Counted from the first letter of the stretch, positions 33,950 through 64,000 are shown. The stretch: DNA of 64,000 nt from Lepidodermella squamata (GCA_047495785.1 JBLDXI010000036.1:186001-250000), one strand, 5' to 3'. The notes: generated by a model from the letters alone, not told the origin. Program-made: numbers and translations.

Positions 33950-34090
33950 ATGTACACGTTACTGCGAGTTATTCTAAGCCTCAGCTTAACAGGCGTGGCT
34001 TATTCAGCCGATTATAGACGCTGCTATTCCCGGCTGAATGATAGCTTCACCGGCTGTAAAGCAGCCTGTTCTTTTTTAAACGAAGTTCAG
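33950..34090 (+). pseudogene. Isolated exon 1 of a 4-Cys micro-exon paralogue, with TATA box at 33931
   Basis: MYTLLRVILSLSLTGVAYSADYRRCYSRLNDSFTGCKAACSFLNEVQ, 141 nt, same length as exon 1 at 60684; GC donor; MITE end 26 bp downstream (34117). Confidence 0.75.
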
Positions 34091-34902
34091 GCAAGTAATC
34101 ATGCTATCTGTTGATTCAGGGTGCAAAGTACAAGGGTGCTGGGGTGTCGCGACACCCCGCCTGCTCCGGGACTCCAACCACAGCTGACAGCTAGGAGAAT
34201 GGGACTTGGATTTTTGAAATCCCCAACTCACGACGGATCGTTTTATATAAAAATTTGTCGCACAATAATATAGAAAAATGTTGAAAAAATGGTAAAGGAT
34301 ATTATTGTGCGACCTGGCTTAGGATCGCTAGTCGCTTTCATTGCGCTTACACGGCTTATTTTGCGTTACATATAAGCCTGAGTAAAAAAACCTATTTTCG
34401 GGACTATTGCTGTCAGCGCACAAAACATTAGATTGAGTCGTTCATCTTAGAAAAAAGCATATCGGAACTATGTACGAATAGACATTCCGTTTTTTCTAAT
34501 GCATAATGATTTTCTGATTTTATTCAGCTGATGCACGCAAAAATAGTTCATATTTATATTTCATAACCACATGCCAGCATTTTAACTACAGGATGACACG
34601 AAAAATAGCGAGAAAAAATTATGGTAAAGAGTTGTTGAACTCAATACCAACAGACAAGTTGTGTCTATGAGCCGAGTGATCTTATCTGAAAAACAGACAG
34701 CATTGAAATAAGTTCAAATTGCGCGGAAATTATGGAACCTGCCGGGGTGAATTACCGATATATATATATATAATAAATTCAGTGTAGATTTAGATGCAAT
34801 GTCTCATTGATTTAGAAAGAAATGATAGAAAAAGTACATATCAATGAGGAAATCACTCGACAGAAGTCTCACAAACGGCGTATACTTGCTCATTTCCAAG
34901 CA

Positions 34903-37900: not shown

Positions 37901-40900
37901 CAACAGATCGCGAGCCATTTGAAGTTCATCAACAGATTTGACTGTAGCCAACTGCCCGCCTTGCGACTGGCACAGGCCATATGCATTATGCCAGGAGGTT
38001 GGTGTGCCAGGCCGTAGTAGGAAGTAACGTTTGCTTGCCCCCAGGCAGTCTGTCTCGTTTGCGAAAGATGTTCCGCGAGGAATCGTGGCTTCTTCTCTCA
38101 AGCAGCCAGCCGGTAATGATCGACAGTTGACAAGTCCGTTAGAAGCCCGAGAAACGCATCGAACATAGCCAGTCTAAGAAGCAATACCGAGAGAATAAAT
38201 ATTTTGTTAATCAGTTCCGTTGAAAAATAATAACAATCAAGCGTTTTTAATACAGTCAAAATTATTCATTTTAAATTCCTACTTAAGCAGTTCAAAAATT
38301 TTAATGTAAATAATTTAATTTAATGAATAGCGAAGGGCGACAAAACAGCAACTTCGCAAAACAGCGAATGCGACAATACAGCAACATCTTAATATGTAAA
38401 AGATGCATTGTGTTTCTGCCGTCACAAGTTGGAAAAAGTTTCTGTTTTTTTTGCGTTTGCTGTGTTGGGAATCTAATAAATAAATAAATAAATGGTACAT
38501 TGCTGTTCTACGACTAAACCGTAGCGTCAATACAGATAGCGACAACTCCGCACGGTCAGCTCCGCAAAATGAATCCAGAATTATTCGATGAATTATTTTG
38601 GCAACAACAACTAACAAGGATTGAGGGTTTCCTCATTGGGTTTAGTTTCAAAAGATTAGTTAATTTTCCTTTCGAAATTATTAAATGGGACACACTGTTA
38701 CACAAAGTTTTCGATCTCGCGTTATTCAATGTGGGTGAGTGTCCAGTCTTTTACTATTAAAACTATTGCTTACCAGATTAGCCTGCGTTGGGGCGTAAGT
38801 TTCACACACCGCTGCTGTATGCCAGCTGTCGCAAACCACGTCCGCCAGATACAGGTTTGTATGATAATCGCCGTCTGTTGCAGCCATCCCATAAGCCGCG
38901 CAGGTTTCTAAATATCGATCCTCTGATCCTAATGAGGCACCCGGCTCGCTTGGCCCCCATTGCTGAGGCAAGGCAACGAAGTTGCTGCTATCGGGCCACG
39001 TAAAAACGCCGTTAATTTTCACCAGGCCCACCCAAGCTCGGTCAAGCGATCCGGCGAATAACAATGCCCTCAGCTGATCTTGTTCATCAACAGTTTTGAT
39101 AGAAGCTAGATCGCCAGATTTCGAATAGCAGAGGTTTCGCGCTGTGTATTGATCGATAGGATCTTGGGATGTTACAATGAATAGCTGTTTTTGGGCATTC
39201 AGGCACTCATCTGCGTTGTTGAACACGGCGTCTAGAGGGTAGGTAACTTCATCATTTCGACAGCCTGTGGAAGCAGCTCGGCATAATGCACCTCCCCCAG
39301 CAGCTACGCAACGAACATAACGGTCCTGAAATCGAAAGCAGAAACCATTAAGGAGGTATATCCTCGAAATCCTTCAAGTTTTATATCAATTCTAGAATAT
39401 TGTGTTCCCCCTTGAATTTTTTACACGAAACTGAAAGAGTTACCTGTGATGATTCACGAATGGTGTATTTTTCGCAGACGGCTCGACCATACAAGTGGTT
39501 GCAAGGGCTGCTGACGAGATAAAAACCGGCGGCGAAAGACCTTTCACTTGGCATAAAATCGTATATTGCGCATATCGATTGATAATCGATCGGTTGCCGT
39601 GGTCCCCATTGCAGTGAGAAATTTCCTAGTGGAGACCCGTCAATCCAGCTTGTTGTTGCTGTTTTGTAGAATCCAACCCATGTTTCATCAGGGTAGAATT
39701 CCTTGAATAATCTGCGAACAATGGCTTGCTCAGTTGCACTTGTGATACTAGCAAGCTGCCCTGCTTGTTTAGCGCATTCAGCGTTCGCATCTGTGAAAGT
39801 CTTTCGGCCGCCCAAATCCAAAAGATAGAACTCTTTGCGCAGGCTAAGGCATTGCGTTTCATTGACGTAGGATTCGTTCGCCGGGAAAGGTATCTCATCG
39901 CTAAGACACCGCTGTCGGCATGCCGCTGCGCCATTTGAAACTGATACACATCTCATAAAGCCAGACTATTCGGGTAAAAAGAAAAAGTCGGAATAATAAT
40001 TTATTTCATATTCCTAACCATAACCCATCAATTCTGAATTACAATCAAATCCCATATGCATAATCCTGACCTTGAAATTTAGGATCAGGCATTATATGGT
40101 TAATCCCAATCTCTAATTATCTTTCCCAAGATTGACTGCATCTCCAAATCCCTACACCTTTATTCTAACCTCTAGCCCTAACCCTGAAGTCCAACCAAGC
40201 CATAACCTCTGCACTATCCTAACACTAACCCTAACTTGATTCCGCACCTAAATTATCTGTTCCAAAATCGATTATTTCTGAACTCCCTAAACCCTAGACC
40301 CTAAAGCTATCCCTGAACCCCAACCAAGCTCTGCATAATCCTGATCATGATCCCAACCCTAATCTCAAGCTCCTATCATCTACCTATTATCTTTCCCAAG
40401 ACTTACTACTTACTGCATTGTTTTCGTAATTTGTAATTCATGAAGCCTGAATCTCAACCTAACCATAATTATTATGCTACACCTTTTCCATTTGCATTTT
40501 GCCGCGGCACAATTGTATTTTGCCGTTTTATTTTTAGCATGAACTTGTTCACGTGAATGGTGGCTGTTATTTTTTGAATACGACGACGAAGAAGACGCAA
40601 AAAATAACAGCCATCATTCACGTGAACAAGTTCAGCTAAAAATAGAACGGCAAAATACAATTTTGAAAAGGTGTAGATGAAAATTTCGTCCCTGCCAAAT
40701 GGAAAACCAAAATCAAAATTCCTTACCGAAATTTGCTGTACTACGTATGTTTCGCAGACAGCGTAGTTATTTAAATTTCTACATTCTGAATCAGTAAGAT
40801 AGTAACCAGCCAATGCTATTTCCGGAGAATACATGTTGCCGTAGGAAAAGCACTTCCTGTAATTGGTGCCCAGCAGAGCGGAGCCAAGTAGCGGTGATAT

Positions 40901-43900
40901 CGGCGAGTACTTGGCACCATCGATCCATCGCAGTTCCGAATTAGATTTAACCAGGCCGACCCAAGCCGAGCGCACGTTTTCTGCCGAGAGCAAATTACTA
41001 GCATGCCTAAGCTCACTAGCTGTTTTCAAAGCCGCAAGTTGGCCACTCTGCGATCGACATCTCGCATTCGCTCCGTTCCAGTCAAGGCCGTTGTTGAAGC
41101 TCAGTAGGAAAATCTTCCTTTCGGCTCTCAAACAGTCAGCTTCACTAGCGAAGGATGTTCTAACGGGTAGCGTGACTTCATCCCTCGAACAGCCGTTAGA
41201 CCATGGCCTGCATGTAACGGCACCCTCCGCCGATCTCAAAACACAGCGAGCGTAGCCATCCTGTAGAAAGCAAATAGTTCAAACTGGAGAAATATACTGA
41301 GAAAACCACGTACAGGTCTGTTATAAGCCGCGAATGTCTCACATATCGCATTCTTCGCAGATCCGAAGCAGTAGTAGCTTTTCGTCAGGTACACATTTTC
41401 TGGCAAATTTCCTTGCTGGTTTCGGGAATATTTCAAACACTGGTAATCAGAGATTGGCACATTACTAGGCCCCCATTGATCACTTAGCGCTGAGAAGTCA
41501 CCGCCATCGACCCAGTGAGATTCGCCACCACTTTGCAGTAAGCCAACCCAGGCATCTTCATCGTTGGACGTCGAATTGGTAAACATAAGGTCCCGCAGTT
41601 CCTCCTGCTCGTCGGCTGTTTTAATTGTCGCCAATTGCGCTGATTCCGCTGCGCATTCATCGTAAGCCTGGTCGTATGTCACATATCCGGCGGGTAGTGA
41701 AAATGCTTTGAACAGCTGTTTCTTCGCTCCGATGCATGCTTCCTCACTTGTGAATCGCACGTTCGGCGGAAATGTGACTTCGAACTGCCCGCAGCCAGGC
41801 AAAATCGGACGACAAGCAACGACTCCGCCTCGTCTTTTCGCAACGCATCGAACGTAAGTGGACTATAAAAAATCGTATTTGAATAAATTTTTCGAATAAG
41901 AAGGTTTCCAATCTAATCCATATCCTAAAGGAGCCCAAAGAAAATAACAGACCCTACTTCAGATGAATTCGCTGCTACTTCAGATAAAGATTATCTGTGT
42001 TACGGAACTAAAAACACCCAAGCGTAAAATTAAAAGAAAAATTAAAACAATAATATAATTAATATAATTAATAGATAAACATTTCGTGTCTCAATTGAAC
42101 TTCTTTACTGACCCTAGCGAAAAAAGTCTTCGCGTGTACATGCATCGACTATGCATTGACGTGCATGTCGGTGGCGCTATGCATCGGCTATGCATGTGAA
42201 TGTATATTGCGTGCATGTACACGCTAGAAAATCAACGCGTTTACATGCGTAGTGAGTGCACAGCGGTTGCATGTGCATAGTTGCTGCGACACATCGACAA
42301 CACATCGACGTGCATAGAAGATGCATAGCGCATGTGAAGCAAATGAATGGCAATGCATAGCGAGGGTGTAAAATACCTAGAATCGGAATCTGTATGCCGT
42401 GATCCGAGATCGATGGAAATCACTTGAGTGATCAATTATTGTAAAATTTAGAAATCCACCTAAATAAAACGTTAGCTGTAATTTTTGCGTTTCCAACTTT
42501 GCTGTTATTGTTTCTTCTACGCATTATATCTTCATAAAGCAGCATTGTTTGTTCTTTCCACCCAATAAGCGCTATTTCAACCTCTCACGGTTCAACCTCC
42601 TACTTCTGCAACACCATGCTCTGAATGAGTTTTAAATTTTACCCAAACTATAGCGCTAGGGAACCATCTCATCTCATCTTTTTCATTTAGCCTAAGAAAA
42701 ACTAATTGTTTAACTGTCCTCACAACGCAAGCGTTCTTCTAAACGGTTAATGCGTCTTTATTATATTGCATTATCAATAGACAATTCTAAACCAATTCCT
42801 TTCTCAGATGATGAAGTCACGAGTATTTTTTTAACCATCCTATATTTAATTATTTGAACTTGGCGACTTAGCCTTGGCGAGCCTTGCTTTTGCTACCACG
42901 TCTACTGAGATTTGAAATGTGCCACGACCTGCTCGCATTTTTGGGTCGGCGGTTCGCATTATTAGGGGTAATAAAAATAAGGCACGCGCGCAGACTGGCC
43001 ACACTATGGCTAGCCATGTCGCTCGTTTTTACTTATTACGCTCGTCGTCATTCATAAAATAACGTTCGCTAGCTAAAAAGCTGAAGGCCTAAGTTTTCGA
43101 TTATTCTTATCACTTTCAATATCATGCCATGCTTGATATTGAACGACCATTAAAATGACGCGCCTGGCGAAGCGCAAGAGGTTCTGAAGTTAATTTTGCT
43201 GCTCTTGAAAATTATGCAAATTATGAAAGTGTATTGCAGCTAGGTCTGTGTCAAGCTTAGGCATGCAATTATTCAAATGGCCTTAAACCTATCACGCTGT
43301 CTCATGTAAGTGGAGACTTGATACTTATTTCTGCATAACTATTGATTTGCTATCGATAGGCTGGAAGAAGAGGTAATTGGCTGGGCTGTCGATTCGCATG
43401 GGGCGGAGGGTTCGAACCCTTAGCTGTCATCCGACGCTTATCATCTTAGAGCTTGGTAAGCATTACGCCTTACCCTGTTGTTTTAGTTTTTCCTTGAGCG
43501 TTTGGTGTATAGATTATAACTGTTTTAATTTTCGAATTATTTTCCGAGCCCCGGCTGCCCGCGGAACGAGCTATTTCGCGTTTGTGACTGGCAATACGAG
43601 ATTGCCCGGCTGCGCCAAAATTTTATCGGGCAAGAAAACCCTTTTCAAGATGTGTTACGCGATGACAAGAAGACGGAGAAGAAGACAACGATGATGAAGT
43701 TGATCTAAGTTGAAGTTAAGGCGAAGGCAACAAAGATGCTGAGGATGAATGTTTCAAGTGTTCGCTATGTTAAGTAAGTACATGTAAACTTGATGGATTT
43801 TTCTCAAATCCTGAGCCATTTAATATTTTATCAGGTTCTGTGGTATGGTGTTTGGATTTCGCGCGCGGTGCGGTGAATTCTTCAAAGTCAGGGTGACTCG

Positions 43901-46900
43901 AGTTATTTCGGTGGTGTACTTGACCACCTGGAAATTGGTGGACAAGTCGCTCATGGTTGCGATCAATATCCTCTATTGTGCCTTTCAAATTGTGTCGATT
44001 TTATCCTATTGTCCTATGGTTTCTGATTCTAATCTCCTCTCTGCAACCTCTTTCGCGTTGTCTTGGCCGCTTTTCTGAGTAAAGAAGTGTGAACTGGTGA
44101 CTTTGACTTCTAAATTTGATAGCGAAATCTGCATATGGGTGGGTAGGGTAGGGTAGGGTAGAGTACCAGTGGTACGCCAGTGGTACCATCAGGTCGAGCG
44201 GATGCAGTAGGCGCAGTAGCCCACCAACAGCGTGTACATGCATATGAGTTGCATGTTGCTTGTGTTCACTTGTATAGCCGATGCAAGGCAGTGACTTGTG
44301 ATTACTCGCACTTTCGACACATCGGCAATTGAATAACTCACAATGGCGACGCATCGGTTTCCAACGCATCGGCTACACATGCGCGCGCATCGACAACGCA
44401 ACGACTATGCATGTAAACGCGCTAAGCTATACATCCACTATACATCGCCGATGCATAGCCATCGCATGCCAACGCGTTGTGGTTTTTTAACTAGGGGATA
44501 GATTCCTAAGTTTCCTTACATTTTCTTCGGAACTGGTAACGAAAGTCTCACAGACAGCGCCATAAGATGTGCCAGCACAAGATACTTCTTTAAGGTAGAA
44601 TCCAGTTGGGGTCGTAAGATCGCCTTGGAAGTGTTCGTAGATGCCACAAGAGCCGCTAATTTCCTGATCGCTCAGCACCATACGGCTGAATAAATTGACA
44701 TATTCCGAACCATCGATCCAGCGAGGTTTCAAAAGACCAACCCAAGCTGAGTTCACTCCACCTTCGGCCATTGCCTTTCGCACGGAATCTTCCTCTGTAG
44801 CTGTCGTAATCGTCGCAAGCTGCCCGGACAGGTCGGAACATAGCTCGTTCGCATCGCGCCAAGATTGGCCCTCTGTAAATTTGATCGCCAAGTATTGTTT
44901 ACGTTGATTCAAACATGATGCTTCGTCCTCAAAGATAATGCCCCGAGGAAGAGAATCTTCATCAGCGCGGCAGCCAACTGCCGTAGATCGACAGGCCACA
45001 TTGCCGTTCAAGGACGAAACACAGCGAGCGAAACCGGTCTAGATTAGAGGATATAAATCTAAGTAATGGGATCTTTAGTTGAAATGAAACATACCGAGGG
45101 CAGCTTTGGCTCGAAAGTCTCGCAAACAGCCGCAGTTTTTAGGTCATCACACGGCACGTCGTTGAAGTACAGCATTTCGGAATCCCGTGTGCCCAGCTCA
45201 ACACACTGCCCATCGCCGGACGGCTCAACCGTATGCCACTGTTGATGGATGGGCCTCAATCTCGCGCCATCAATCCAAGCGAACTTAGATGAATCTGAGT
45301 CGTACCTCAGACCAATCCAGGCAGGCAGTTTTGATGCGTTGCTGCTGAGAAGCTCACGGGCTTGATTCAACTCAATCGGCGTTTTCAGCGTGGCGAGGCG
45401 GCCATTTACTTGGCTACAGGCTCGGCTAGCCGCATCGTAGTCGGACGCGGGTGATAGGTCAGCTTTGAATAGCCTTTTTACAGCGTAGAGGCATTCGAAT
45501 TTGTTGATGACACCAAACTTCGGCGGGAAATGTTCTTCGCCATTCGAGCATTGCTGGCGACATGAGACTCTTCCGTTTATATATGGATCGAAACATCGAA
45601 CGAGAGGCTGTAAAAATCAGTTCAATAATCTTGTTCAAAAACGGTTTAGGGCACACTCTCATTTTATACAATCTTTCGAGTTTGAGAATTTTCCCACCAA
45701 CCACAATACCGTAATCCGGTACAACTTTGAACAGGTACAACTTTGAACATTTCACACAAATAAGCTTTTCTCTGAAACCATGGGGATCTACCGCTTGGGA
45801 ATTTACTGAATATAGGTTGAGATCTAACATTTTGCCAAGTTTCATCAACACAGCCCCCAAAGTCTCTTCCTTAAAAATTCCGAAAAAACAAAGTTTTTGG
45901 TCTACTTTGAAGTGTTGTCCAGCGATAATTGTACTTTTGGGGTACCCCTTGCCAAATCCTTACGCTTGCAAATTTCCGAGAATAAAAAATATCAGGATTT
46001 TACGGTGGGCGGCCCCGGTCGAACTACCTTGAATTTTCACATCACAATGAAGTTTGCATGGACGTAGGTGTTCAAAGTTGTACCGGATTACGGTATTTCG
46101 AATTTTTGAATATATGAATTGAATTTATTTCAATTAATGATTCATGCTTTGCCCCATGGACCCCCATTTATCAATCAAAATCAATCTGAAATCATTTACT
46201 TGTGGATTCATTAAAAAATCCCAGTAAATCTAATATAAAGAGCTTGGAAATTATAATCCCAGGGTAAACCAAAAAATTCTGGTCAAAATAAAGCAAAATT
46301 GGTAAAAAAAATGGGTCGAAATCAAATAAAATCCGATTCTCCAGTAACCAAACACCTTGATTTTTGGCAACTTTACGACACCAGGCTCGAAAATTGTTAC
46401 AGACAATCCAAAAAGTTGACGCATCAATAAACTTACTGAAGGAAATTTCAGACTGGCAAACTTCTCACAAATAGCCCCTTTCGCTGTCATCGAACATGCC
46501 ACATCAGCCAGATATGTACCACCAGGCAGCGAAGCTGTTAACTCGAAACTTTCGTAAACTCCACATTGGCCATCACTACCAGGGTTCCCCGGGCCCCACT
46601 GCCTTCCTAGTCTTTGAAATCGCGAGCCATCAATCCAGCCGAAATCAGCTGTCTTCGTAAGGCCAACCCACGCCTGGTTAAGGTAACTCGCCGGGTACTC
46701 AGCCATGAGCTCAGTCACTTGTCGGTGCTCGACCAGAGTCCTGATAGACGCTAAGCGTCCATTTCTCAGGCTGCATTCTTCATTCGCCATGTCCCAAGTC
46801 GCTGGAACATCGAATATAATCGGGAAGTATTCCTTTTCAGATATGGAGCATTCGTTCAACGTGGAATAACTCATTGCGAGTTGATCTACTATCTCGTCGC

Positions 46901-49900
46901 CAATACAGCCATCCGTTATCGCCCGACAAGAACTTTCACCCGTAGAGAACGAAATGCATCGAAGGTAACCGGGCTGAATAAAAGAAAAAAAATCATGAAA
47001 AAATATCGTCGGAAATGTTGTGAAGAACCCACCACAGGCAGCTCATAGCTGAAAGATTCGCACAGTGCAAAGTCTTTTCCCAGGGAAGGCTGGTCGAGTC
47101 GAAGGAAAAAGTTAGTAGGCTTCACTTCGGCTCGATCGAATGTGACAATCGAGCCAAAGGAGTCTTCAAGGCTGTTCGGGGCAGGCTCAGCTACTCCTGG
47201 CAGCTGGGCGTAATTTGCGCCATCTGACCATTTCAAAGCTGATTCACCGCGGACAAGACCGATCCAAGCCGAGTCGATTGATCTGCTGGTCAAGAGTTGG
47301 CGAACTTGTTGAAACTCGGCGGCTGATTTTATTGTCGCGAGCTGGCATTTGCCCGATGCTTCGTGCCAACTACCGCGTGATTCCAGGATGGAATATTTTT
47401 TCTTAGCTTCAATACATTGAGCCTCAGACTGGAAAGGCGTCGAGGCCTGAGCTGTTGTTTCGTGGCGTTCGCAGCCTGGAGGAAACTGGCGGCAAGCTAC
47501 CTGACCACCATTGGACCTTGAAACGCAACGAACGTACGCGGCCTTAAAAACAACATTATAAAACAAATTACTCTGAAAACATACAAGCATATAAAGTTGA
47601 CGGAATGTTTTAATTAATTTCGAAAACTCTCAATTTCGTTTGTTTTTTCTTTGAAATTTTTGATGCAAAAAGCAGCGCATAGAATTTTCAACGATTTTTC
47701 TTCTTAGGAACAAAGTAGAATTCTCGAACTAGGGGATATTTGCGAGCCCAAATTTTATAACCGAAGAAATAGAAAATCAAATCAAATCAAATAAAAGTCA
47801 CTTGAGGCCCTTTTCTCAATTTCGAGAGCTTTCAATGTCCATATATACCTAATTTAGCTTCTACCATTCCTGAATATAAAAGACTAAGTGAAAGCTGAGC
47901 ACGATCCGTTAGTAAATTCGTGAATTATTTAACGGTTATTGTCATAAAATCCTCACCTGTCGACTTCCTTCCCGATAGGTCTCGCAGATAGCGAAGTGAG
48001 CAGCAGCATCGCACGGAGCATCATTTATGTACAAAAGCGAGTGATAATCTCCTGCAGTGCTGTAGCTAATATAAGCCACGCATGTGTCGTAGCTGTTTGG
48101 CTCACCCGGCCCCCATTGTTGGTCGAGCGGCGTGAACTCTGAGCCATCAATCCACGTGTACTTGTCGGAAATCATCTTAAGACCGATCCAGGCTGTATTT
48201 GAAGATCTCGCGTAAAGCAGAGCTCGAACTTGGTCTTGCTCGTCGGCTGTTTTTACCGAGGCGAGTCGCGCGGAGCTTTTCAGACACAGTTGTCGGGCGT
48301 CCTCGAAGCTGAGTCCTTGCAATGCGTCTGGAATAAATAAAACCTTGGCAGCATATTGGCAGGTTAGGTCAGTTGAAAAGGCAAGATCGCGAGGAAGTGT
48401 TTGCTCTTCTCTTCGGCAGCCCGAATCATAAGGCCGGCAGGCTACTTCACCATTTCTTGCCACGCACCGAACGAAACCAGCCTGAAACAAGATAAGATTT
48501 TCCCATATCGAAGACTGAAATATTTCGATTAGGAAAAAGGTACTCGCGCCAAAACTGTATTACAAATTCTTGAAAAATGAAGAATTTACTCAACCAACCT
48601 TGACGATTGGGTCTTCGAAGGTCTCGCAGATCGCAGCTTGGATCGTTGAATCACAGGGAACATTTTTCAGGTAATATATCTCCTGCGCCGAAAACGGGAA
48701 GTACGCAGCACAGGAATCTTCGCCCGGGCCATCGAGGCCCCATTGGTCAGAGAGCTCACTGAACATCGATCCATCGTTCCAGGTCCGATTGCCTGAAATT
48801 CCGGTCAAGCCAACCCAGGCAGACAAGGTTGGTGAGCTCGAAAGCATCAGCCTCGTTAATTCGACTTGATCATCAGCCGACTTGATAGTCGCAAGCTGTG
48901 CCGATTTCGAAGAGCAGAGATGCCGAGCGGTTAATCGGTTGATTGGCTCAAAGGTAGCCTCGATGAACAGCGTTTTGCGCGCAAACTTGCAGTCGAATTC
49001 TGAGAGATAGATTTTCTCATTCGGAAAGGTAACCTCCAGTCTATCGCAACCACGTTCGGTTGGTCTACAAACAGCAGAACCTTCGCCATATTTAGCTACA
49101 CAACGAACAAAGCCCTATGGATATATAAAATAAAAATCGGATTTAGGCGGAGAATAAAATTAAACTCACGCTGGAAAGAGCTCTTGGTCGTAAGGATTGG
49201 CATATAGCACCATTTAAGGTAGCTGAGCACGAGAGGCTGTTGAGGTAATAATCAGGAGCTCGGGAATTCGAAGCGGTGAGAAATTCATAGATTCCACAAG
49301 AATCGACTGGGATAGGGTCGAGGTTCCGAATTCGCCCAGGAAGCTCAAGATAAGGCGACCCATCCAGCCACCCCAGCTTATCAGCATTCGTCAGCCCAAC
49401 CCAAGCTTTATTCATAGATTCGCCCGAAATTAGGTTGCGAGCGATTTCTTGCTCTGTAGCCGTAGTTATCGAAGCCAATTGGCCTGAAGCTTCGGAGCAG
49501 GCATCTTTAGCTTCGAGCCAGGTTTTCGCTACATCAAACTTGAGGATAAAGAGACGTTTTTCCTGGTTTGAACATTCGGAGCGGTTGGAATAGATGACGT
49601 CAGGTGGCGAGTGGGCTTCATCACGAGCACATCCGATCGACCTCCGCCGGCATGTCGCTGTTCCAGTTACAGATGACACGCACCTTTTGAAGCCGGCCTA
49701 GAAACAAAAATAAAAATGTGAATCTTTGATAAACCCCTAAATTGAAATTTTGAAAAACAAATTTTAAAATAAATTTTAGGAAATGTTCGAGATAATGTTC
49801 AAAATGTGACCAGAGCAACTTACGAGTCGTACATCGGCCATGCATTTGCCATAGTTATCCGCAAAACTGTTCTCGAAAGCGTAAATTTTGACCTTGAATA

Positions 49901-51075
49901 TACAAACAGAATTAACTTGAATGTCACGATAACTCAAAACGATACCTGTTGCAATCCTTGCGGGCACGATGCGTAGCATACACTTGAAGTGAGTGATTCA
50001 CACTGAACAGCGTTCTGAAGGAAACAGATCGGAAATTTAGAATTTTATCAGTTAAAAATTGAAAATTGAACTCACAAATCTCAAGCAATTATCTTCAGAT
50101 CTGAAAGCTTCGGGCGAATAAATCGAAGTCTCAGCAGGCGCTGGACATTTTTTGCGGCATGCCTTAAAATTTCGCGTCGAGGTATCGAAGCAGCGATAAA
50201 CAGGGGCGAGGTCTGGAGCTCGAACTTGAAAAATTCAAAATTCACCAAAATTCAATTTTCGACCGGGAAATTTTACGCCATTTAGTTTGACAATCTTCCA
50301 AATCATCAAATGTTCGCCCTGGTTTCTGTAAATTCGAGATTTTAGTATGAGCAAAATTGAGAAATTATTGTTAACCGTTCCGGCCGGGCAGTCCAATCGC
50401 TTTGGCATGCACGTCACCGTGTAACTGCCTTGATGACAGCGTTTGAAATGCTGGGTCTGAATTTGATATTAATGACGATAATCTGCTCGTTCCCATGGCT
50501 GGTCTTACCTCAAAATGTTTCAGAGCCAATTCGCACTCCTCGTAATTGTCTCTGAAGAATTTGGCACGGCTGAAAAGTTTGATCTAGAAAGAAACATGAA
50601 CCAACATTTTTACTTATAATTTTCATTGTAAAACGAAATTTGAAAAAAATCTCTAATTATTTGGGTGCTCTATTTTATCGAAAAATCTAACCTCAATCTC
50701 GCCTTCACGGCAACTGGTGATTCCAAAGCGGCAGATTGGCATCAATTTTTCATACAGGTAACAGAGTCTCGCAGCCTAAATGAAAATAATTACCGAAACG
50801 CTGTTAAATTAATGACAAATTTATAGAATTGACCCCCTGAGTGCAGACTGTAACATCAGTAAAATTCAGCCCTCGCTATTAAAAAAATATTTTGAAATTA
50901 GAAATTTTAATGCTGAGTAAATCTAAATTACCGGATACTCATTCAATCGACAGCCTTCAGGTAATCTTCGACATCGTTTAAAGGAGGCGTCGAACTGTGA
51001 GAAGCACCGTATCCAAGTTGTTGCAGAAGCAACGGGTACAGCAAAAATCGCAATCAAAATAAATGAGCGTAACAT
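34903..51075 (-). CDS. Giant secreted lectin: signal + 5 four-Cys modules + 16 x [four-Cys module + C-type lectin domain] (~3,060 aa, 25 exons)
   Basis: Micro-exons 51075-50932, 50875-50834, 50775-50692, 50583-50509, 50456-50376, 50325-50277, 50224-50076, 50014-49946, 49892-49824. CTLD exons 49697-49170, 49114-48599, 48481-47957, 47542-47033, 46973-46437, 45607-45095, 45038-44520, 41862-41314, 41260-40727, 39965-39444, 39325-38774, 38173-37661, 37605-37081, 36739-36212, 36000-35479, 35427-34903, all GT-AG and phase 0. LAS/TI, W(V/I)GL, WIDGS and A(V/I)CE motifs; no TM segment; TATA at ~51130. Confidence 0.85.
40511..40662. repeat. Near-perfect ~65-bp-arm hairpin in a lectin intron
   Basis: 40511-40576 is the reverse complement of 40598-40662, 21-nt loop. 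Confidence 0.8.
42112..44496. mobile_element. Non-autonomous EnSpm/CMC-like element (2385 bp), 2-bp TSD GA, in a lectin intron
   Basis: Ends CCCTAG..AAAAAA / TTTTTT..CTAGGG, GA on both sides; ATGCAT/GCATCG-rich subterminal repeats at both ends. Confidence 0.7.
45709..46093. mobile_element. Tc1/mariner-pogo type MITE (385 bp)
   Basis: Perfect 25-bp TIR CCGTAATCCGGTACAACTTTGAACA with TA TSD on both sides. Confidence 0.85.
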
Positions 51076-54074
51076 TTTTAACACAAATAAAACTGGAAAA
51101 ATAAATAAATTGAACAGTCAATTAGCTTTATAAATACAACTAATAGAGAATCGTTCGAGAAAATTCTTCAGTAAAACGCGTGTCTCTGCGTATTTAGAAC
51201 GAACACGTGTGGTTCATAATTACTATCGGGATTGAAATTAGTGGCCATTCACAAATAGATGAGTGTAAATTTTAAACGCTCGATAAGACGTGAAATGTTT
51301 TATCGTTATCGGCCATTGGCAGGTAAAAATTCTAATTTTTTATGATTCTTATGACGTCATCTACCAACGGAAATTGTTGCGAATTTTTATGTTGATAAAT
51401 GTTCGAGCCAGTGATAAATAAATAAAAACACTGCATTTTTATTCAATATTTTTTATTCAAAATTTTTCCTTTCTTTCGAGATTTTTTCCTCAGATGCACC
51501 TGCAGCAGGTCGTAAGAAAATACGACAATTATGCGGAGGACAAGTGAGTTCAAACGATGTAATAATTTGCAAACTGGATTGATTTTCTGAAACATTAAAA
51601 ACCTGGGTTTTCTTTCGCCACCGTCAAGTTTTACATACGAACGAACTACCCTGATTTAATTAAAACTCATCCGCATCCTCGAAATTCAGGTATCATAGAA
51701 TATTATATCTGCAAAATGCGGAGAAGCCGAGCAATGCTTGCAAATACAATAAGAGCCAGCACCCAGCAGAAGCACAAAAATGAACAAGCTGTGTTTTTTG
51801 GACGGGGCCGAGCATAATGGCACGGCTGCTCGAGCCGGAATCGGGTAAAGCTGATCATTAGGCGTAAAATAATGAAAAATATTGAAATGTTAGGGACGGA
51901 GGACACGATTCACATCATGATTCAGTTGGTCAAAAACACCGACCAGGCGATTCTTGAAGTACTCGGCACCGCCGATGAGGCGAGTTTATTGGACAGAATC
52001 GAGGCCGTACGATCAAGACATCGGCGAGTTTTAGCAGATCTGTCATCGCTGAAGTCATCTGCTGATAATCGCGAGCTAATTTTCTCAAACTTCATGCTGA
52101 ATTGAAAGATGCGGTGAAAACAGCCCAATGTGTCCCACTGGAGAAACGCTTTCAAGAAGTCGAAGCGGAGTTGCATCTCGTTCAAAAAGAGAATGCCCGC
52201 ATGTCTCAAGCTGTGTTCGGAAAAGACCGCCAGACTGTGTAAGATACCAAGCGCAAACTGGAATTGAGCGGCTCTGGAGTTGCCGACGTCGTATTCTTAC
52301 CGCAGGGCAACGTTGCAAAATTCAAGTTCGTCACTCGACAACAAGCAGCCGCAGCCTTGAAAACATCCAGGAAAACGGATGCAAGGACATCTTTGCTTGG
52401 ATTTTTTAGTATCTGGCAGCTTGGCGCTGGGCCTAATAGAAGTGTTCCACAAGGGCTGAAAGTCACAGTGAAGGAAGTAGGCTTTTCGCCGAAAGGGAGA
52501 TGCCCATCAATTTTCACTCGCGACTACGTCGCTCGCATTCTAATCTTCACCTCTTTTTCTGGTGATGCTTTTGTAGTAGATTCATTCCCACTTTGTTGCT
52601 TTCAGACCTTTCCCCTCACATTAATTCTGATAGTTTTGGGGCAGGAATGCTACGAAACAAAAAATTGTAACACCGCGAGCGATGCGAGCTTTAGCTGTCG
52701 CTTTTTCGCAAAATCATCGGTTAGAAATGTGCTGAAAATGATTCGAATTAAAAATTCTTGGACCTTGGAAGAAGTTCAAGCTAATTCAACTCAAGGCTAG
52801 AAGATTCTCAGCATTTGAAGCAGTGTTTTTTTTAACAAGCGATTGTTACAAACGATTTTTTTGGTAGTTACCTCGCTTGAAAATTATAAGACTTGTGCTG
52901 AATTGGTGAAAATTTAGAGTAATTTGAACCTAGTGAATTTGAGTACAAACGAAGCGATGAAATTTTTCGGATTTAACAATAAAATTAGCTCCAAAACCCC
53001 CTAAAAATGACGATATAACAGGCTTTCACAGACGTTACTACGATATTGGATTTTAAACTCAGTCCGATTGGTTGTTTCAGTGTAACAATTGTTACAAGCC
53101 TGAAAAACATTGTTTGAAATCTATCCCTTCTGAATTGGGCCGATACGGGATTCTCTTCCTCAACGAAATCTCGATGAAAGCTTGAAGTGCCAGTTTAACT
53201 AATGCTCATTGTATGCTTTTCGCAGATCTGAAAGGAGCAATGATAAGTAGCCTGAACGAGCGCAGCGAGTGAAAAATTGTGAAAATGCAAGAGCGGAAGC
53301 AATTTTCTTATATGGCTCTGAAAATGCAAAGCTGCAGCCCTTGTAGTAGCTACATCATGACTGATACTGAGGCTAAACATTGAGGTTTACTGAGTGCCGT
53401 GCACTTTCCTTTTAAGACAAAGTTTAGAGAAGGGGGATGGTTTACTTTTTTGGGGGCGCGACGTTTCGCGAAGAGGGGGTAAACCCCCTCATCCCTCATC
53501 TTCAAGGGGAACATTCTATCGCCCTCCCCAAGCTGGCTAACAATATATTTCCGGGCAAGACTGTCTGCAAGGTCGATATCGTAATAAATTCTTGCGATAC
53601 TTCCCACTTACCATATTCTGGGTCATGGCCCAGTTAACGGCTACGGCGCGCACCTTTATTGCCTTCAATAAAAATCGCTAAAAATTGGCTTTTCGTGATT
53701 TGATGTTATTCAGCTGAATTTTTTGATTTTTCAAAAATTTTCATTCCAACGCCTAATGATTTAATTTTAGCCGTGGCGATTCGCAATTGGTAAATTCCAA
53801 TGAATCAATAATTTCAATTAATAACAAAGTGGTCACTTTCCTCGATGGTTTATATGAATAATCAAAATTATTTGCAAATTATTGTAAATTGAGAAAAAAA
53901 TTCTGACAGTGGGAAGTAAAATCTTTCGAAAAAAATTTTAATTTCGAAATTTTGAAATGTTCTAAGGTGGATTTAACCCGAATTCTTCATGGACTTCAGT
54001 GCCCGCATCAACTCTGCAACCGTGGTTGCTACTAAGTCGAAGTATCATTCGATTCGATTTGATACAAAAAATAG

Positions 54075-56562: not shown

Positions 56563-56995
56563 GCTCGAATATGACCTGCCGTCTGTGGCGGTGTGGGGTG
56601 AGATTTTGCGATTTTCTATCATTGTAGTTCGATAACAGGCTCATTTGATTTTTCGCAGACTGCTGAATACCTTAGCAGCATCTTGAGAGCAGAATACTCA
56701 AGCGACGCTTTGCGACAGAAATGGCGAGTTAGTCTTACGTTTTCGTAACATGCATACCAATGCCACGCAACGGTGTTGCTTTCCTCCCACACTATCGATG
56801 CTCTTTCTCCAGAGCGACCGCTCCTTTGTTGGCTGCCGACCGCCTTGCAACTCGAACTACATGACACAGGTGAAATTTTGAACAATGATCGAAAGGCAAT
56901 AGAATTTTGATGACTAACAAAAAATGTTCTGTCATTTTGGTCCTTCAGCGTTGGAACTTGAATCGACGAAGCGCATTGCAACAATGAAATGGGTT
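56563..56995 (+). pseudogene. Deleted remnant of a 4-Cys micro-exon paralogue (exons 2, 4, 5, 7, 8 homologues)
   Basis: Shares intron/exon sequence with 61075-61730 (TTCGATAACAGGCTCATTTGATTTT, CAAGCGACGCTTTG, TTTCTCCAGAG.GACCG). Confidence 0.75.
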
Positions 56996-57299
56996 TTTTT
57001 CTATGGGAAATGGGAAGAGTGTTTTATTTAACTGATAACATCTGACTGGTAGCGAGTGAAAATTGGGATTCGGCGTCTTATTTTTCTGTATTTTCCAGCA
57101 TATGGCAACAGGGTGCGATCTTGGATTCCGGAGCTGCCAGGGATGGAAAAAAATTGTTTGCTGTTTTTGCCAAAATTACTTGTTATTTTGGCGAATAACA
57201 GAGCGAATAACAGTTCTTTACTTTAATAGTTTCTTGTTGTGTTTTCTTTTGTTTTAGCCTGATGCACAAGGACCGAAACGTCGCCCGTTATAAGTAAAG

Positions 57300-59442
57300 T
57301 AGTAAAACCTGTTATCTCGAACTCTGTGTATCTCGAAAACTCGTGTATGTCGAACGCGTGGCGAGGAACCGTGGGTTTTTCAGCATGTGACACATAATAT
57401 TTACTCTGTGAAGTCGAACTCTGTCTATCTCGAAAGTCGAAGGGCGGGAAAGGAACGGTAGCCATATGGCCCATTGTTTTGACTCTGCGAAGTCGAATTT
57501 TCAGAGCTAATTCCTAAAATTTCTTCGCTAAATTCTAGAGTAATTTCATTCACAATTTTTGTTTTACGATGCCGGAATTAAATCCGCAAGATAAAATGAA
57601 GGTTTTGGAGCTTATCGATGCGAAAACTCCCTATCCTAAAATAGCCGTCGAGTTCAATATCGCGCCGTCTACCGTTTCTAAGATCAAGAAAGATCGCGAA
57701 AAATTACAAGCTCTCTACTTGAGTTCACTCGCTGTTAATAAAGAAGGCAAAGTCGATGACACCAAATGCCGATCGCGCTCGCTGCGAGAGTGTAAATTTG
57801 GAGTCATTAATTCTATGCTTCTGGCGTTCCTAGTGCTTTGTCGAAGCAAGAACATTGCTCTAGACGGTCCCATTTTGCAAACAAAAGCGAAATTCTTTGC
57901 TGATGCCCTGGGATATGCCAATTTCGCGGCGAGTAACGGCTGGCTTCGCAGCTGGCTTGATCGCGAAGGGATTTCATTGAAAGAACTAAGCGGTGAATCG
58001 GCGGAGTTGCCGAAAGAATCGCTCGCGGCATGGTTCCTAAAACTACCCACTATAATTGCCGGCTATGCGATGAAAGATATTTTTAATTGCGACGGTAATT
58101 GATTTTTTTCAATTTTACGATTTTTTTTATAAATTTTATGATTTAAAGGATTTTTTTTCCGTCAACTTCCGACTCGGTCTTACGTTTTGAGCGATGACGC
58201 ATGCAAAGGCGTTAATGTGGCTAAGGAGCGTGTTAGCGTGTTGTTTACCTGCAGCGCTCTCGGCGAGAAATTAAAGCCGCTCGCAATCGGTAAAAAATCC
58301 TCGCGTTACATAATCTTGTGTAAACACTTCATTCCAGGTCACGCGGTGTATCCTCGCGCGTTTAAAGCAAACAACGTGGCTCGCGACTTGCGTAATCTTC
58401 CGGTCACGTGGCGTTACAGTAAGAAGGCGTGGATGACGACGGCTATTTTTGAAGAATATCTAAAGGACCTGAACAGCGCCATGAACAAACAAAACCGCAA
58501 AATTTTATTGCTTCTTGACAACTGTTCAAGCCATGTCGAAATCGAATTGTCGAACGTCAAGCTGGTGTTTTTGCCTCCTAATTCTACTAGTGAAGCCCAG
58601 CCGTTCGACCAAGGCCTCATTTACAATGTTAAATTGCACTTTCGCAAGTTTTTGCTTCAGCGCCTAGTTTCTCGCATCGACGACTTCGAGACGGCGTCGG
58701 ATTTTACGAAAACAATCACTGTTTACGACGCCGTAAATTGGATAACTGCGTCGTGGAATTTGGTCAGGCAAGAAACATTCGTGAAGTATTTTGCGAAAAG
58801 CGGCGTATCGCCCGCGGGTCAGCTGGAATACGACGCTGAGGACGAAATCCCGCTGTCAAGCCTCGTAGTTGGCCTCGATAAATTACCGGCCGCGATTTCC
58901 GCTGATTTAAATCTTGAAAACGTCGACTTCGACCGCGATTTGCCAGTTCATTACGAGCCCGAAGGTCAAACCGTCGATGATGTTGCGCGTTTCGTACTCG
59001 AACGTCGAGAAGAAGAGGCCGCTCAAAGCGTCGCGGAAAACGCTGGGGCGATCGAAGTGCTTGAAGAGACACTAGACGGCGTTCCTGTTCTCGAGCCGCC
59101 TACGGTCGAGGCAGCTTTGGCGGCTATTGACAGCGCTATTCCAATCATTCTGGCATTCAATTAGGCGATACTCTCGTTAACATTGAAAATCAAATTCATC
59201 AAAAGCGGGCAGCTTGCCTTAGGCAGCCTAGCATCACCGAGTATTTCAAATCCAGCGTCAATATTAATTAACTTGTTGATTTTCGTGCTCTGAAACCTTT
59301 TGACGATGAAATAAACGCGTTGTAATAGGCCCAGGGGCTATTTTCCATGCTTTTATATCGGTCTCCCTCTATCTCGAATCTCTCTGTAAGTCGAAGGGGT
59401 CGAATGGCACCGTGAGCCTTCGAGATAATCGAGGTTTTACTG
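57300..59442 (+). mobile_element. pogo/Tigger-family DNA transposon, degenerate
   Basis: Right TIR reads CAGTAAAACCTCGATTATCTCGAA followed by TA; left TIR is a decayed match; encodes the transposase below. Confidence 0.9.
57569..59270 (+). pseudogene. Tigger/pogo transposase (HTH-CENPB + DDE_1, DD29D), introns 58095-58148 and 58290-58337
   Basis: FAASNGWL, IFNCD, KAWMT, LLLDNCSSH, QPFDQG; the DETG motif lacks ET; the C-terminal PIP box QPSITEYF lies in a shifted frame after the stop at 59164. Confidence 0.85.
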
Positions 59443-60683
59443 TAATCAAAAGCAACTTACTGTCTGCCTGTCTGTCTGCGTGTCTGCGTGTCTGTCTGCC
59501 TTCGCTAAATCATCCAGCGTTACAGAAGCGTTACAGAAAAATGGGCTTACTTAGCGCCTCGCCCCAATCATAGATCACTTCGTTCTGATGAATGAATGAC
59601 CCAAATGAATGAAATTGAACTACAACAATTGGGCGAAAAAATCAAGGCGCAATAGTGTTTGAGGTCAGATGCATTAATTTCGTCCTATTGAAAATATAGT
59701 TCATTCAGCCTGAATCTGGAACGCAGCTATTGTCTTCGATCTATTGTCTATAGTCGAAACGAGAAACGAGGTTGAAAAAACGAGACGCTAATAACAGCTA
59801 ATAAAAGGTGAACTAGTTTGTTGTCTGACTGTTGTTGCACAATCGCAATTGCGAGCTGGCAGGGCATCAATATTTTAATTTCTAACGAGCAAAAAACGCC
59901 TCTATTGGACAATGGAAATTTCATTTCGTCCGAAATGTGTTATTAGTCGGAAAACGGTCGTTCGCGTTTTATTCACTGCTCATTGCGAACAGTTTCAGCC
60001 TGACATTGAATAAGGTTATCTTAAATTCAAAGATCAAGGTTAATTTATATCTCTCTTAGCATGCCAGCAATCTCAGGTAATAAATTTTCCAGACTAATGA
60101 TGTCGACTTTGCTCTAAATTCTTCTGGGCCTAGAATGTTTTCGAAAATTACGCTGGTTGATTGCGCTGTGCGCTGGTTAATAAGAATGAGCTCTTGAATC
60201 GAGCGATTGTTTTGCTACGAGTAGTGGCCTCGGACTCTCTGTCCATAGTCCAAACCAGGTCAAGGTTAATTATAAAGGACGAAAACTCGCAGCGAACCGC
60301 GAACTTTGACCCTAAAAAATTTCCAATTTAGGTTTTACACTTACCAATTCTAGTTATGTGCAATGGAATTTATTGCGAGGCAAATCACTTTTCCAGTGCT
60401 AAGAGCTAAGGATGGAGCTCATTTGGAATAAATATTATTTTGCCTGTCTAACTTGATGTTCATATATTTTTCAATGTAGCGAATTAAGTAACGATTACGG
60501 GAGTAGTTTTAACGATCATACGATCACGTCCAAATTCTCCGTCAAAGTCTTTCGAATGCCCATTCCAAATAAAATAAAATGGATATAAATTGAGAATGTT
60601 TGAGTAGGGTAGCTATTAATTTGAGGACCGATTCTTGCTCTTTTTATTTAGGAAGCTTATTTTATGATTCTATTCTTAATCAA

Positions 60684-63170
60684 ATGGCCACTGCTATTCG
60701 CATTATTATTTTGATGACACTGGCCAGTTCGGCTGTCTCAGTCGAGTACAGGCGCTGCTTCTCTCGACTCAATGATAGCTTCACCGGTTGTAAAATGGGA
60801 TGTACCTTTGTCGAAGAAGTTCATGTGAGTAAACACATTTTCTCTGAATGAATTTTATTAAACAAATGCCTTAGCTCGGAACTGCACTGCCGTCATTGGC
60901 AACCTGCTTGGATGGGGTGAAATGCGCTTTTGTAAATACAAATTTGTTGCTACGCGTTTATTTCAGTCCGCTCGCAGCTGTTTTAACTACAAAACAATCA
61001 ACATGCGCTGTATCCCCCGCAACTTGGGCTGTTCGTCAATCGACGAAGTTATGGTAAGCATTTAAATCGTTCTTCTTCGATAACAGGCTCATTTGATTTT
61101 TCTCAGACCGCTGAGTACCTTGGAAATAACTTCGAAACGCAGTACAATCTGTGTAGATCTTCAATCAAAAAATTCCCAGTGAGTATTATCTCAAATCAGG
61201 CTCTGTGCGAACTTGGAACTTCACCGCAGAATGTTCAAGCGACGCTTTGTGAAAAAAATGGCGAACGAACCTGCATTCCAGCAGATGGCCCTTGCCCAAA
61301 CAATGGCGTAAGCATTTTCGCTTGTTTCGCCTATTTTTCCGGCTCAATTTTACCGTAGAAAGTCGTGGGCTACTGGTCGACTACGCTATCTTGCATGGCA
61401 CAGGAAAACTGTGAGTTTGCACATGTTTATGATTCCAAAATCTTTCCTAATTTCATACGTTTCAGTGCAACGTAACGAAACCGACTACCTTCCGCACTAT
61501 CGGTGCTTTCTCCAGAGTGACCGGTCCTTTGTTGGATGCCGACCGACGCCCTGCAACTCGACCTACATGACTCAGGTGAGGCTTGGAACAATAGACTTCA
61601 ATTAATATTAGCGCTTTCAACCCCGTAAAAATTCGTCAAAATGACTGTATAATAACTTGCAAAAATCATTTTCTTATTTCAGTCTTACAGTGGAGGAACT
61701 TTCATCGACAAAGCTCATTGCCTCAATGGGGTTGGTTTACTGTATTGAAAAAGTAGATTTTACTGATACAATTTCATCAATTCACAGCCGGTAGTGCTGT
61801 GTCACTCGTCGAATGGCTACGATTGCCGCGATACCTGCCCTTCTCCCATGACAGTGGTAGGCTCAGTTTCAAATGAATACATCTAGTACAGACCTAGTTG
61901 AACCATTTAGTATACAACGTTCGCCTGGAGACCTGATTTTACTACCAACTACGCAGATTGCCTCAATTTTTCAAGGGTTTGGAACTGAGGCCAGAATCGA
62001 TAGCAATCATTCGCTTTAATATTCACAGCCGTCACTGCTGTGTTCTTCGCCGAGTGGCTTCGTTTGCCGAGACTCCTGCCCGCCCCCGATGACATTGGTA
62101 GTTCACTTGAAGTTGACTCTACAAAATTATCTACTACATATTCAGGTTTCGATATTCAACTCCCAAAAAAGCGCTGCTGAAAACAACGCTTATTGCCTAG
62201 ACGAATTGGTTTGAATCCTAATCATCTGCTTCCATTTGCCATGATATCATCTTTCAAACCCGACAATAGAAACCCCATAAAATCTGCGTCGATCAAACCT
62301 CGTACAAATTTGTGAAATGCATTCCGGTATCTAATTACACATGGTGCCCTACCGGAATTATAACGGGAGCAACCTTCAACAACTCGATCGAGTGCGCAAA
62401 TGGTAAGCATTGATCATCGCTTGATTTAATTTTAATATTAGAAAATTGATATACAGCACCATCAACCATGTATCCTCATCGCCGATGCTTCGAACCTTTG
62501 GGGTTGACATTTCCAGGATGTAAACAAGCCCCACAGCAGTGTGATGGCAACAATGTAAGATTTTCCTTGGTAGTTTCCATATTTTCCTAAATTTCCTTTC
62601 CTTCAAGACGCTGAGTCCAACTGTCTATATTACTAAAGCGGAATGCGAGGCAGGGGTAAGATTTTCAGACTTCCTTTTGGGAACATTTCCCTGGTTCCTT
62701 TAATTATGCCGTTATAGCGAATTCGAGTATGTTATGATGGAACGAATGGTGGCAGCTGTCTTGAAACTTGCCCTACTGGGCCCGGGAAATATGATGTAAG
62801 ATAGATATTATGAAAAAATCAGACGGAAATACGTAAATTCACATTACAGCTTGGCCTCGTAGGATCCCCCGACTCTCTGTCTAAATCTTTTGATAGCTGC
62901 CGAACTTTCATGGAGGTAACATTTCTATCTTGAAAATAATTTCATGTCATTTGGCGTTGTGTATCCTTACTAGGGCAAACACGTCAATTGCGTCAACAGT
63001 GTGACAAAATTTGCTGTTGTTTGCATGCCACAATCGATGAATTGCCCAGCTAATACGGTAAAGTCAATTGTAATAGGTTTAGATATGCATCTAGAAAGGT
63101 ATTATTGCAGACATCGTGGGCCAATGGTCAGCTCTACGACAACTTGAACCAGTGCCTGATAAACAAGTAA
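60684..63170 (+). CDS. Secreted cysteine-rich micro-exon protein with ten 4-Cys modules (~487 aa, 19 exons)
   Basis: Exons 60684-60824, 60875-60916, 60967-61053, 61107-61178, 61230-61307, 61359-61410, 61466-61575, 61683-61730, 61788-61856, 61911-61976, 62029-62097, 62146-62208, 62270-62402, 62457-62554, 62608-62655, 62718-62795, 62850-62915, 62974-63057, 63111-63170. All GT-AG, no internal stops; signal peptide MATAIRIIILMTLASSAVS. Confidence 0.8.
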
Positions 63171-63439
63171 GATACATTTATCCTTAGAAGTTAGAAATAA
63201 GTTGCTAGTTGCTACTTTCCCTAACCAAAAGCCGAACAACAGGGGGGCCCCTTATATTTTCTATCCTCGCCCCTGAGAGATGCAAGAGGGAACCCTTACC
63301 TCCTATATCCCCCTTTCGGTAAAATTCCCATCTTCTACACCGGGGAAAATGCTGTTTGCTACCTCTTTGTAGCTGGGTCTAGTAGGATCACCTTATTAGC
63401 TAGACTTTTCCCAGCCAACGTTTTAATAGCGGGAGGGAG

Positions 63440-63697
63440 CAGGGTGCGATCTTCGATCCCCGAGCTCCCAGGGATGGAAAAAACTTTATTGCTGTATTTG
63501 CCAAAATGACGAGTCATTTGGGCTTATAACCGAGCGAAGCGAGAAAATTTTGGAAAATTTCCACTAAAACACGTCCCAGAACCTCCCAAAATTAACAAAA
63601 CAGTAGGATAAATTCTCATTTTGTTGTTTGGCCCCTCCGAGGGGGGATGATCCCCCCATTCCCCCCCCCCCCCCTCCCTCCTGAAAGTCGCACACTG
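63440..63697. mobile_element. hAT-type MITE (258 bp)
   Basis: Imperfect TIR CAGGGTGCGATCTT / AAAGTCGCACACTG, perfect 8-bp TSD GGAGGGAG; 5' fragment of the same family at 57109-57200. Confidence 0.8.
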
Positions 63698-64000
63698 GGA
63701 GGGAGACTCTTGTGCTTTTCCAGAGAACTCTACTTCCCAAAGCAGTAATTTTCGCTGATTTTCAGACCGTCCCTGGAAAATGACGAGAAATTAAAATTTC
63801 GCATTTATCTGCATGTTTTTCTGTTTTTTCTGGCCTCCGCTGCAAATGAAGTTTTCATTAAAAATAGATGAGCACAGCGTGGTCGAATTATCTAGAAACC
63901 GATGAAAAATTGATAGGTCGGAAAATCTATCCCCTCCGGCGCCTTATGGGAAGATGTTGAGTCATCTTGGCGATCTCTCTGGATCTCTAACCGTAAATGA

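Follow-up and report, generated by a model that had tools for sequence, protein, structure and literature searches.

The modules that have been shuffled among metazoan proteins are typically bounded by phase-1 introns, and schistosome micro-exon genes (MEGs) encode small peptides that are mostly unstructured and are not known to have cysteine repeats. MEG exons measure 3-81 bp, typically less than 40 bp, and introns reach 5 kb (bioRxiv 10.1101/2023.06.21.545858); a second source concerns the accelerated evolution of schistosome host-interface genes, MEGs included (PMC4350168). Here we describe a gene that can be set beside both systems, at positions 60684-63170 on the + strand of a 64,000-nt window of DNA from Lepidodermella squamata (GCA_047495785.1 JBLDXI010000036.1:186001-250000), the window being the whole stretch that was analysed. 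We consider it probable that this is an intact, intron-dense gene for a secreted ten-module chain of a lineage-specific four-cysteine domain. The resemblance to MEGs, which a preliminary description of the window had drawn loosely, we judge to be superficial.

Results

Structure of the ten-module gene

We rebuilt the gene from the sequence in the three + frames, with GT-AG boundaries, and arrived at a model identical to that of the preliminary description: 19 exons of 42-141 nt each (median 69 nt), separated mostly by introns of about 50 nt. All 18 introns are GT-AG; 17 of them measure 48-62 nt and one 107 nt. The coding sequence (CDS) of 1464 nt encodes 487 amino acids (aa) with 40 cysteines (Cys), which matches the signal peptide and ten four-Cys modules reported earlier. 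The spacings between successive Cys of a module, previously given as roughly 6-11, 3-8 and 14-22 residues, were measured as 7-10, 3-8 and 15-24, and the linkers between modules have 7-18 residues. The division of nine modules into a three-Cys exon followed by a one-Cys exon was confirmed (9 of 10), module 7 (62270-62402) being a single exon, and so was the prevalence of phase-0 introns (16 of 18; the other two are in phase 1). The features are as follows.

60585-60591, + strand: TATAAAT-like motif ~95 nt upstream of the ATG, a candidate core promoter read from the sequence
60684-60824, + strand: exon 1, ATG, signal-like peptide (residues 1-20; hydrophobic core, mean Kyte-Doolittle 1.66) and Cys 1-3 of module 1
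60875-60916, + strand: exon 2 (42 nt), Cys 4 of module 1; donor GTGAAA, followed by a 50-nt intron of the usual length
60967-61053, + strand: exon 3, Cys 1-3 of module 2; 24.8 bits against module profile A1
61107-61178, + strand: exon 4, Cys 4 of module 2; the next 51 nt are an intron (haplotype stops)
61230-61307, + strand: exon 5, Cys 1-3 of module 3
61359-61410, + strand: exon 6 (52 nt, phase-1 end), Cys 4 of module 3
61466-61575, + strand: exon 7, Cys 1-3 of module 4, the module nearest the lectin-gene consensus (14.7 bits, lectin-only profile)
61683-61730, + strand: exon 8 (48 nt), Cys 4 of module 4; weak donor GTTGGT
61788-61856, + strand: exon 9, Cys 1-3 of module 5; tandem duplicate of exon 11
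61911-61976, + strand: exon 10, Cys 4 of module 5
62029-62097, + strand: exon 11, Cys 1-3 of module 6
62146-62208, + strand: exon 12, Cys 4 of module 6
62270-62402, + strand: exon 13, the whole of module 7, unsplit, phase-1 end; 43.5 bits against the module profile; predicted local distance difference test (pLDDT) 81.8
62457-62554, + strand: exon 14, Cys 1-3 of module 8
62608-62655, + strand: exon 15 (48 nt), Cys 4 of module 8
62718-62795, + strand: exon 16, Cys 1-3 of module 9
62850-62915, + strand: exon 17, Cys 4 of module 9; haplotype differences 4 synonymous, 1 non-synonymous
62974-63057, + strand: exon 18, Cys 1-3 of module 10; 34.3 bits against the module profile
63111-63170, + strand: exon 19, Cys 4 of module 10 and the TAA stop (63168-63170)

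Only exons 2, 8 and 15 are shorter than 50 nt. We read 61179-61229 as a 51-nt intron because a second haplotype, described below, has two stop codons there; once these stops had come to light, a reading with 18 exons and 42 Cys, which included a 201-nt exon and a 35-nt intron, was abandoned. The end of exon 2 was placed at 60916, which gives a 50-nt intron, versus a 35-nt alternative. In the open reading frame (ORF) track the gene is nearly invisible, as had been noted before, but nothing about this is special: it is the ordinary look of an intron-dense eukaryotic gene rather than of a hidden one.

Evidence for an intact gene under selection

The GC content of the exons is 0.48, versus 0.34 for the introns. 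Coding potential was scored, as log-likelihood in bits, with a codon model trained on the long exons of a neighbouring lectin gene (see below). The CDS of the ten-module gene scored +68 bits in frame, against -82 and -107 bits in the other frames and -46 to -141 bits on the reverse strand, and the concatenated introns scored -172 to -205 bits.

In a public genomic run two haplotypes appear at roughly the same depth, the second being ~6-7% diverged at the locus. Among the exonic differences listed, 13 are synonymous and 5 are non-synonymous, where the neutral expectation is ~78% non-synonymous (binomial P=1e-5 vs neutral). The haplotype indels (3 of 3) and the stop-creating changes (2 of 2) are all intronic. 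All 40 Cys are retained in the ten-module gene; in a pseudogene copy at ~32.4-33.6 kb, Cys are missing and stops and a frameshift have appeared. Together, these observations place the structure far outside chance expectation and support a real, intact animal gene under purifying selection, as predicted from genomic sequence.

Heterozygosity is very high at this locus, with 23 haplotype differences in 352 nt (61121-61472), and 14 differences and 3 gaps in 194 nt (62781-62974).

The protein begins with a hydrophobic, signal-like stretch that has small residues ahead of its probable cleavage site, and no later stretch resembles a transmembrane segment. These features suggest that the ten-module protein may be secreted.

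The same module in a giant lectin gene

A second gene in the window carries the same module in combination with C-type lectin domains (CTLDs).

34909-51117, - strand: giant lectin gene, ~10 kb upstream, with signal peptide, extra N-terminal modules and 16 cassettes of module + CTLD (Lectin_C matches)

Translated in six frames, the window shows the four-Cys pattern within one open frame at 20 places, and 17 of these 20 lie in the lectin gene. Sixteen of the 17 directly precede a Lectin_C domain, forming cassettes of 165-178 aa. Each cassette is phase 0-0 and has its acceptor ~5 residues ahead of Cys 1, and the inter-module introns of the ten-module gene fall in the same place. A hidden Markov model (HMM) of the lectin-gene modules only matched modules 4 and 10 of the ten-module gene with the four Cys in register (14.7 and 9.1 bits), and independent profiles of the two genes aligned over 38 columns, again with the Cys in register (hhalign, 85% probability, E 6e-6). 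Because of the lectin-only HMM matches, the hhalign result and the shared intron place, we treat the ten modules and the lectin-gene modules as one family. Both genes share the motif aromatic-x-R-C ... G ... C-R/I-P ... C ... F/Y-x5-C.

The signal peptide of the lectin gene lies at ~51.1 kb, and its extra four-Cys modules, which stand alone, lie at 50.1-51.0 kb. An insertion may be present in a gap at 41.9-44.5 kb, and the lectin domains are without the long-form N-terminal Cys pair.

Predicted fold of the module

We modelled the module with AlphaFold, using the family alignment. One lectin-gene module was predicted with a mean pLDDT of 91.1 and a predicted template modelling score (pTM) of 0.64, with strands at residues 2-7, 14-18 and 27-29 and a helix at 39-43. 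Module 7 (pLDDT 81.8) gave the identical order of elements, strand-strand-strand-helix. In the model, Cys 1 and Cys 2 lie on the hairpin strands, Cys 3 ahead of the third strand and Cys 4 in the helix. The fold is thus confidently predicted to be a beta-hairpin with a third strand and a short C-terminal helix, and the four Cys presumably form two disulfides per module.

Searches for known relatives of the module

The preliminary description could not fit the Cys spacing to EGF, Kunitz, Kazal, WAP, ShK, chitin-binding or sushi domains, and the searches bear this out. In Pfam, no family, TIL and Lustrin_cystein included, matched any of 27 module sequences at E<=10, and none matched module 7 or 61107-61307 (exons 4 and 5 read through intron 4) at E<=1; the lectin cassettes matched Lectin_C only, beginning after the module. 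The checks that had been proposed, a module HMM against Pfam and large protein sets and structure prediction followed by Foldseek, returned no confident match to a known domain.

Further sequence searches gave the same outcome. A search of PDB sequences with the module returned a single chance row (E 1.4). A 45-position module profile built from the 27 sequences found no genuine match among 1.84e9 representative proteins; its lone match, P0001, is a translated satellite-like repeat and was rejected as spurious. A word-indexed search of 5.8e9 proteins with one module + CTLD cassette exon found nothing, and a 16-cassette profile in the word-indexed protein search found one generic fish CTLD. A metagenome scan with a 5-row alignment returned only three loci, all with generic CTLDs; at least one of these is bacterial and lacks the module. 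The ESM Atlas, queried by sequence features, gave no usable match, the module was absent from the two contigs scanned (L001 and L002) from a search for sister-species material, and Rfam had no match anywhere in the window.

Fold searches with the module models likewise matched no known family. The sole EGF row in them was the fibulin-4 EGF domain at a Foldseek E of 9.9, and CBM14 or tachycitin appeared neither in a row of the fold searches nor as a Pfam match. MbtH-like proteins (PF03621) are partners of bacterial non-ribosomal peptide synthetases, and the module does not carry their signature. The mucin CysD/CYS domain is much larger than the four-Cys module and has roughly ten Cys. A proposed kinship with oikosin, a larvacean house protein, was dropped: the literature matched for the oikosin Cys domain concerns this mucin domain, and nothing marked the animal as a larvacean.

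Within the reach of the tools used, these results support a family found only in this genome. The earlier proposal of a new secreted, disulfide-rich repeat family therefore stands in so far as no known family matches; its secretion and its disulfides are predicted properties.

Module duplication and decayed copies

At the DNA level no tandem repeat is detectable across the ten-module gene, and modules 5 and 6 alone still align, introns included. Protein identity to module 7 ranges from 17 to 34% among the modules. Several one-Cys exons misaligned when they were entered in the module alignment as fragments; three were used.

The decayed copy mentioned above is inverted (32400-33600, - strand) and has counterparts of exons 7-18, with stops and several Cys lost; its frameshift sits inside the module-7 exon. 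Beside it, at 33950-34111 (+ strand), a first exon that looks intact encodes a signal peptide and Cys 1-3 and has 74% DNA identity to exon 1. A degenerate partial duplicate at 56628-56886 (+ strand), ~4 kb upstream of the ten-module gene, corresponds to intron 3/exon 4, exon 5 and exon 7; its DNA is 83-93% identical to them and has internal deletions. Between this duplicate and the gene, at 58187-59164 (+ strand), is a 325-aa ORF with a strong match to the DDE_1 (pogo/Tigger-type) transposase (E 1e-35), which may have been involved in local rearrangements.

Other content of the window

The window is animal DNA, containing Cys-loop channel ORFs, C-type lectin domains and a pogo-type transposase. 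Two intronless ORFs for Cys-loop ligand-gated channels lie on the - strand at 887-1933 and 4611-5708 (348 and 365 aa). The latter, the sole channel ORF searched, has its nearest relatives in ENA metagenome contigs at 39-59% identity, and its named matches are vertebrate alpha-9 receptors (24-27% identical). A 375-aa ORF at 9356-10483 is without a match, and a 522-aa ORF at 29442-31010 (+ strand) has a weak ANF_receptor match (E 0.008).

A high-copy repeat occupies 63216-63700 (+ strand), directly past the stop codon of the ten-module gene, and contig depth climbs there to 290-909. Loose contig ends are numerous at 63302-63340. Further on, near 63650-63680, there is a long tract rich in C. A stretch related to this repeat ('cagggtgcgatcttcgatccccgagctcccagggatggaaaaaa') recurs at ~57105-57150.

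Discussion

If the locus is the intact ten-module gene that we favour, its product would be a ~51 kDa secreted protein made up only of a signal peptide and ten tandem four-Cys domains of 35-45 aa. The pair of exons with three Cys and one Cys would represent an ancestral two-exon domain unit, multiplied by tandem duplication, in which phase-0 boundaries would keep the frame as modules were duplicated; module 7 would be a unit without the internal intron. The local gene cluster would evolve by birth and death, the copies at 32.4-33.6 kb and 56.6-56.9 kb being its decayed members. Splicing would most likely be constitutive. The protein could form a chain of rigid, disulfide-braced units in extracellular matrix, mucus or a surface coat. 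Because each lectin domain of the neighbouring gene comes with this same domain, the most likely role of the module would be that of a stiff spacer or an accessory binding unit alongside lectin domains. We infer both disulfide bonding and constitutive splicing.

The finding, if true, would enlarge the known set of extracellular modules by a new family of small disulfide-rich domains, one whose fold is predicted with confidence and whose expansion can be clearly traced. The family would occur in two architectures: (i) a pure ten-repeat protein, and (ii) the partner of every lectin domain in a giant protein with 16 CTLDs. The origin of lineage-specific modules and their spread through exon duplication, here in phase 0 versus the usual phase 1, could conveniently be studied in it, and a set of genes in this genome that come out of standard pipelines as 'no hit' would gain an annotation. 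The principle is not new, as animals repeatedly invent such repeats. A bolder version is tentative and, in our view, rather doubtful: that a new extracellular two-disulfide domain, strand-strand-strand-helix in order and similar in shape to the cytosolic MbtH fold, is confined to a poorly sampled animal lineage and serves there as a main building block of secreted matrix and lectin proteins, with quick gain and loss of modules through the two-exon phase-0 unit and possibly with regulated use of exon pairs.

Several points weigh against the intact, constitutively spliced gene that we favour. The contigs of the sole public run that cover the locus are genomic and pass straight through the introns without joints, so the splice junctions are predicted ones, and we infer the function of the protein from its architecture alone. 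The donors of exons 8-12, five in a row, are non-consensus (GTTGGT, GTAGGC, GTTTGG, GTAGTT and GTTTGA) and could be a pointer to regulated splicing. The 45-position profile is weak at long range, the lectin-only profile scoring the whole ten-module protein at ~16 bits, and distant homologues in other phyla could have been missed by so short a profile. The protein libraries also seem to be without L. squamata or close relatives, since the best relatives of the channel ORF are the metagenome contigs described above. Finally, the 3' end of the gene is uncertain because the stop codon overlaps a donor-like sequence, no AATAAA lies within the 100 nt past it, and a repeat begins at ~63216.

This last point bears on the alternative that survives best, although we regard it as unlikely: that the locus is part of a longer gene, or an unexpressed recent duplicate heading to decay. 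The TAA at 63168-63170 overlaps a good donor consensus (AA/GTAAGA, 63165-63172), which makes a phase-2 donor possible; a repeat insertion stands where AATAAA might have followed, and decayed copies lie nearby. Yet the frame is complete from the ATG and signal peptide to the stop, 40 of 40 Cys are kept, the polymorphism points to purifying selection, and a profile scan of 63171-64000 found no module-like exon. We think it distinctly improbable, the short profile notwithstanding, that the module is a very divergent member of a described disulfide-rich family (EGF-like, chitin-binding, Kazal/FIMAC-like, Kunitz-like, three-finger and so on) which simple HMM and fold searches failed to recognise; those searches returned the chance rows given above, and the predicted fold matched no known family.

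Comparison with known systems

The least probable of the explanations that we weighed is a MEG-like device, in which symmetric exons or exon pairs would be skipped to give secreted isoforms differing in module number and kind: 15 of the 19 exons (lengths that are multiples of 3) and every exon pair could be dropped without a frameshift, given 16 of 18 introns in phase 0, the weak donors of exons 8-12 are of a kind often seen in cassette exons (a small hint), and modules so strongly diverged would make isoforms differ in content, but any single skip would leave an odd number of Cys, with 3 or 1 unpaired, exons 6, 7, 13 and 14 are not symmetric singly (6+7 and 13+14 only as pairs), selection between the haplotypes is purifying, and the constitutive-looking lectin cassettes use phase-0 boundaries as well. 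The suggestion in the preliminary description that exon skipping could diversify the product has so far found no support, on the same grounds. Skipping of whole exon pairs is possible.

What the ten-module gene shares with MEGs is a secreted product (predicted here) and many short exons, mostly multiples of three in length. The earlier likeness breaks down on size: exons of 42-141 nt and introns of ~50 nt stand against exons of 3-81 bp and long introns (bioRxiv 10.1101/2023.06.21.545858). Purifying selection here also contrasts with the accelerated evolution that is the topic of PMC4350168. Alternative splicing is documented for MEGs, whereas the present gene is known from its genomic sequence, and its product is predicted to contain ten folded four-Cys domains.

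The intact ten-module gene that we favour can also be compared with the classical metazoan mosaic proteins built from EGF, Sushi/CCP, TSR and LDLa modules. No sequence or fold match connects it to them, its modules having four Cys and a predicted strand-strand-strand-helix order. EGF-like domains, at ~35-40 aa, have six Cys (paired 1-3, 2-4 and 5-6) and are all-beta, whereas the module here has four Cys and a predicted C-terminal helix; CBM14 (PF01607) has six Cys with conserved spacing and aromatics, against four Cys here. As in the mosaic proteins, small Cys-rich modules stand in tandem in a secreted chain (secretion being predicted in our case), each module is encoded by one or two exons, module boundaries coincide with introns of one phase, exons have been duplicated in tandem, and the module is combined with lectin domains, here in the neighbouring gene. 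The phase itself sets the two apart: the boundaries are in phase 0 in the ten-module gene and typically in phase 1 in the mosaic proteins.
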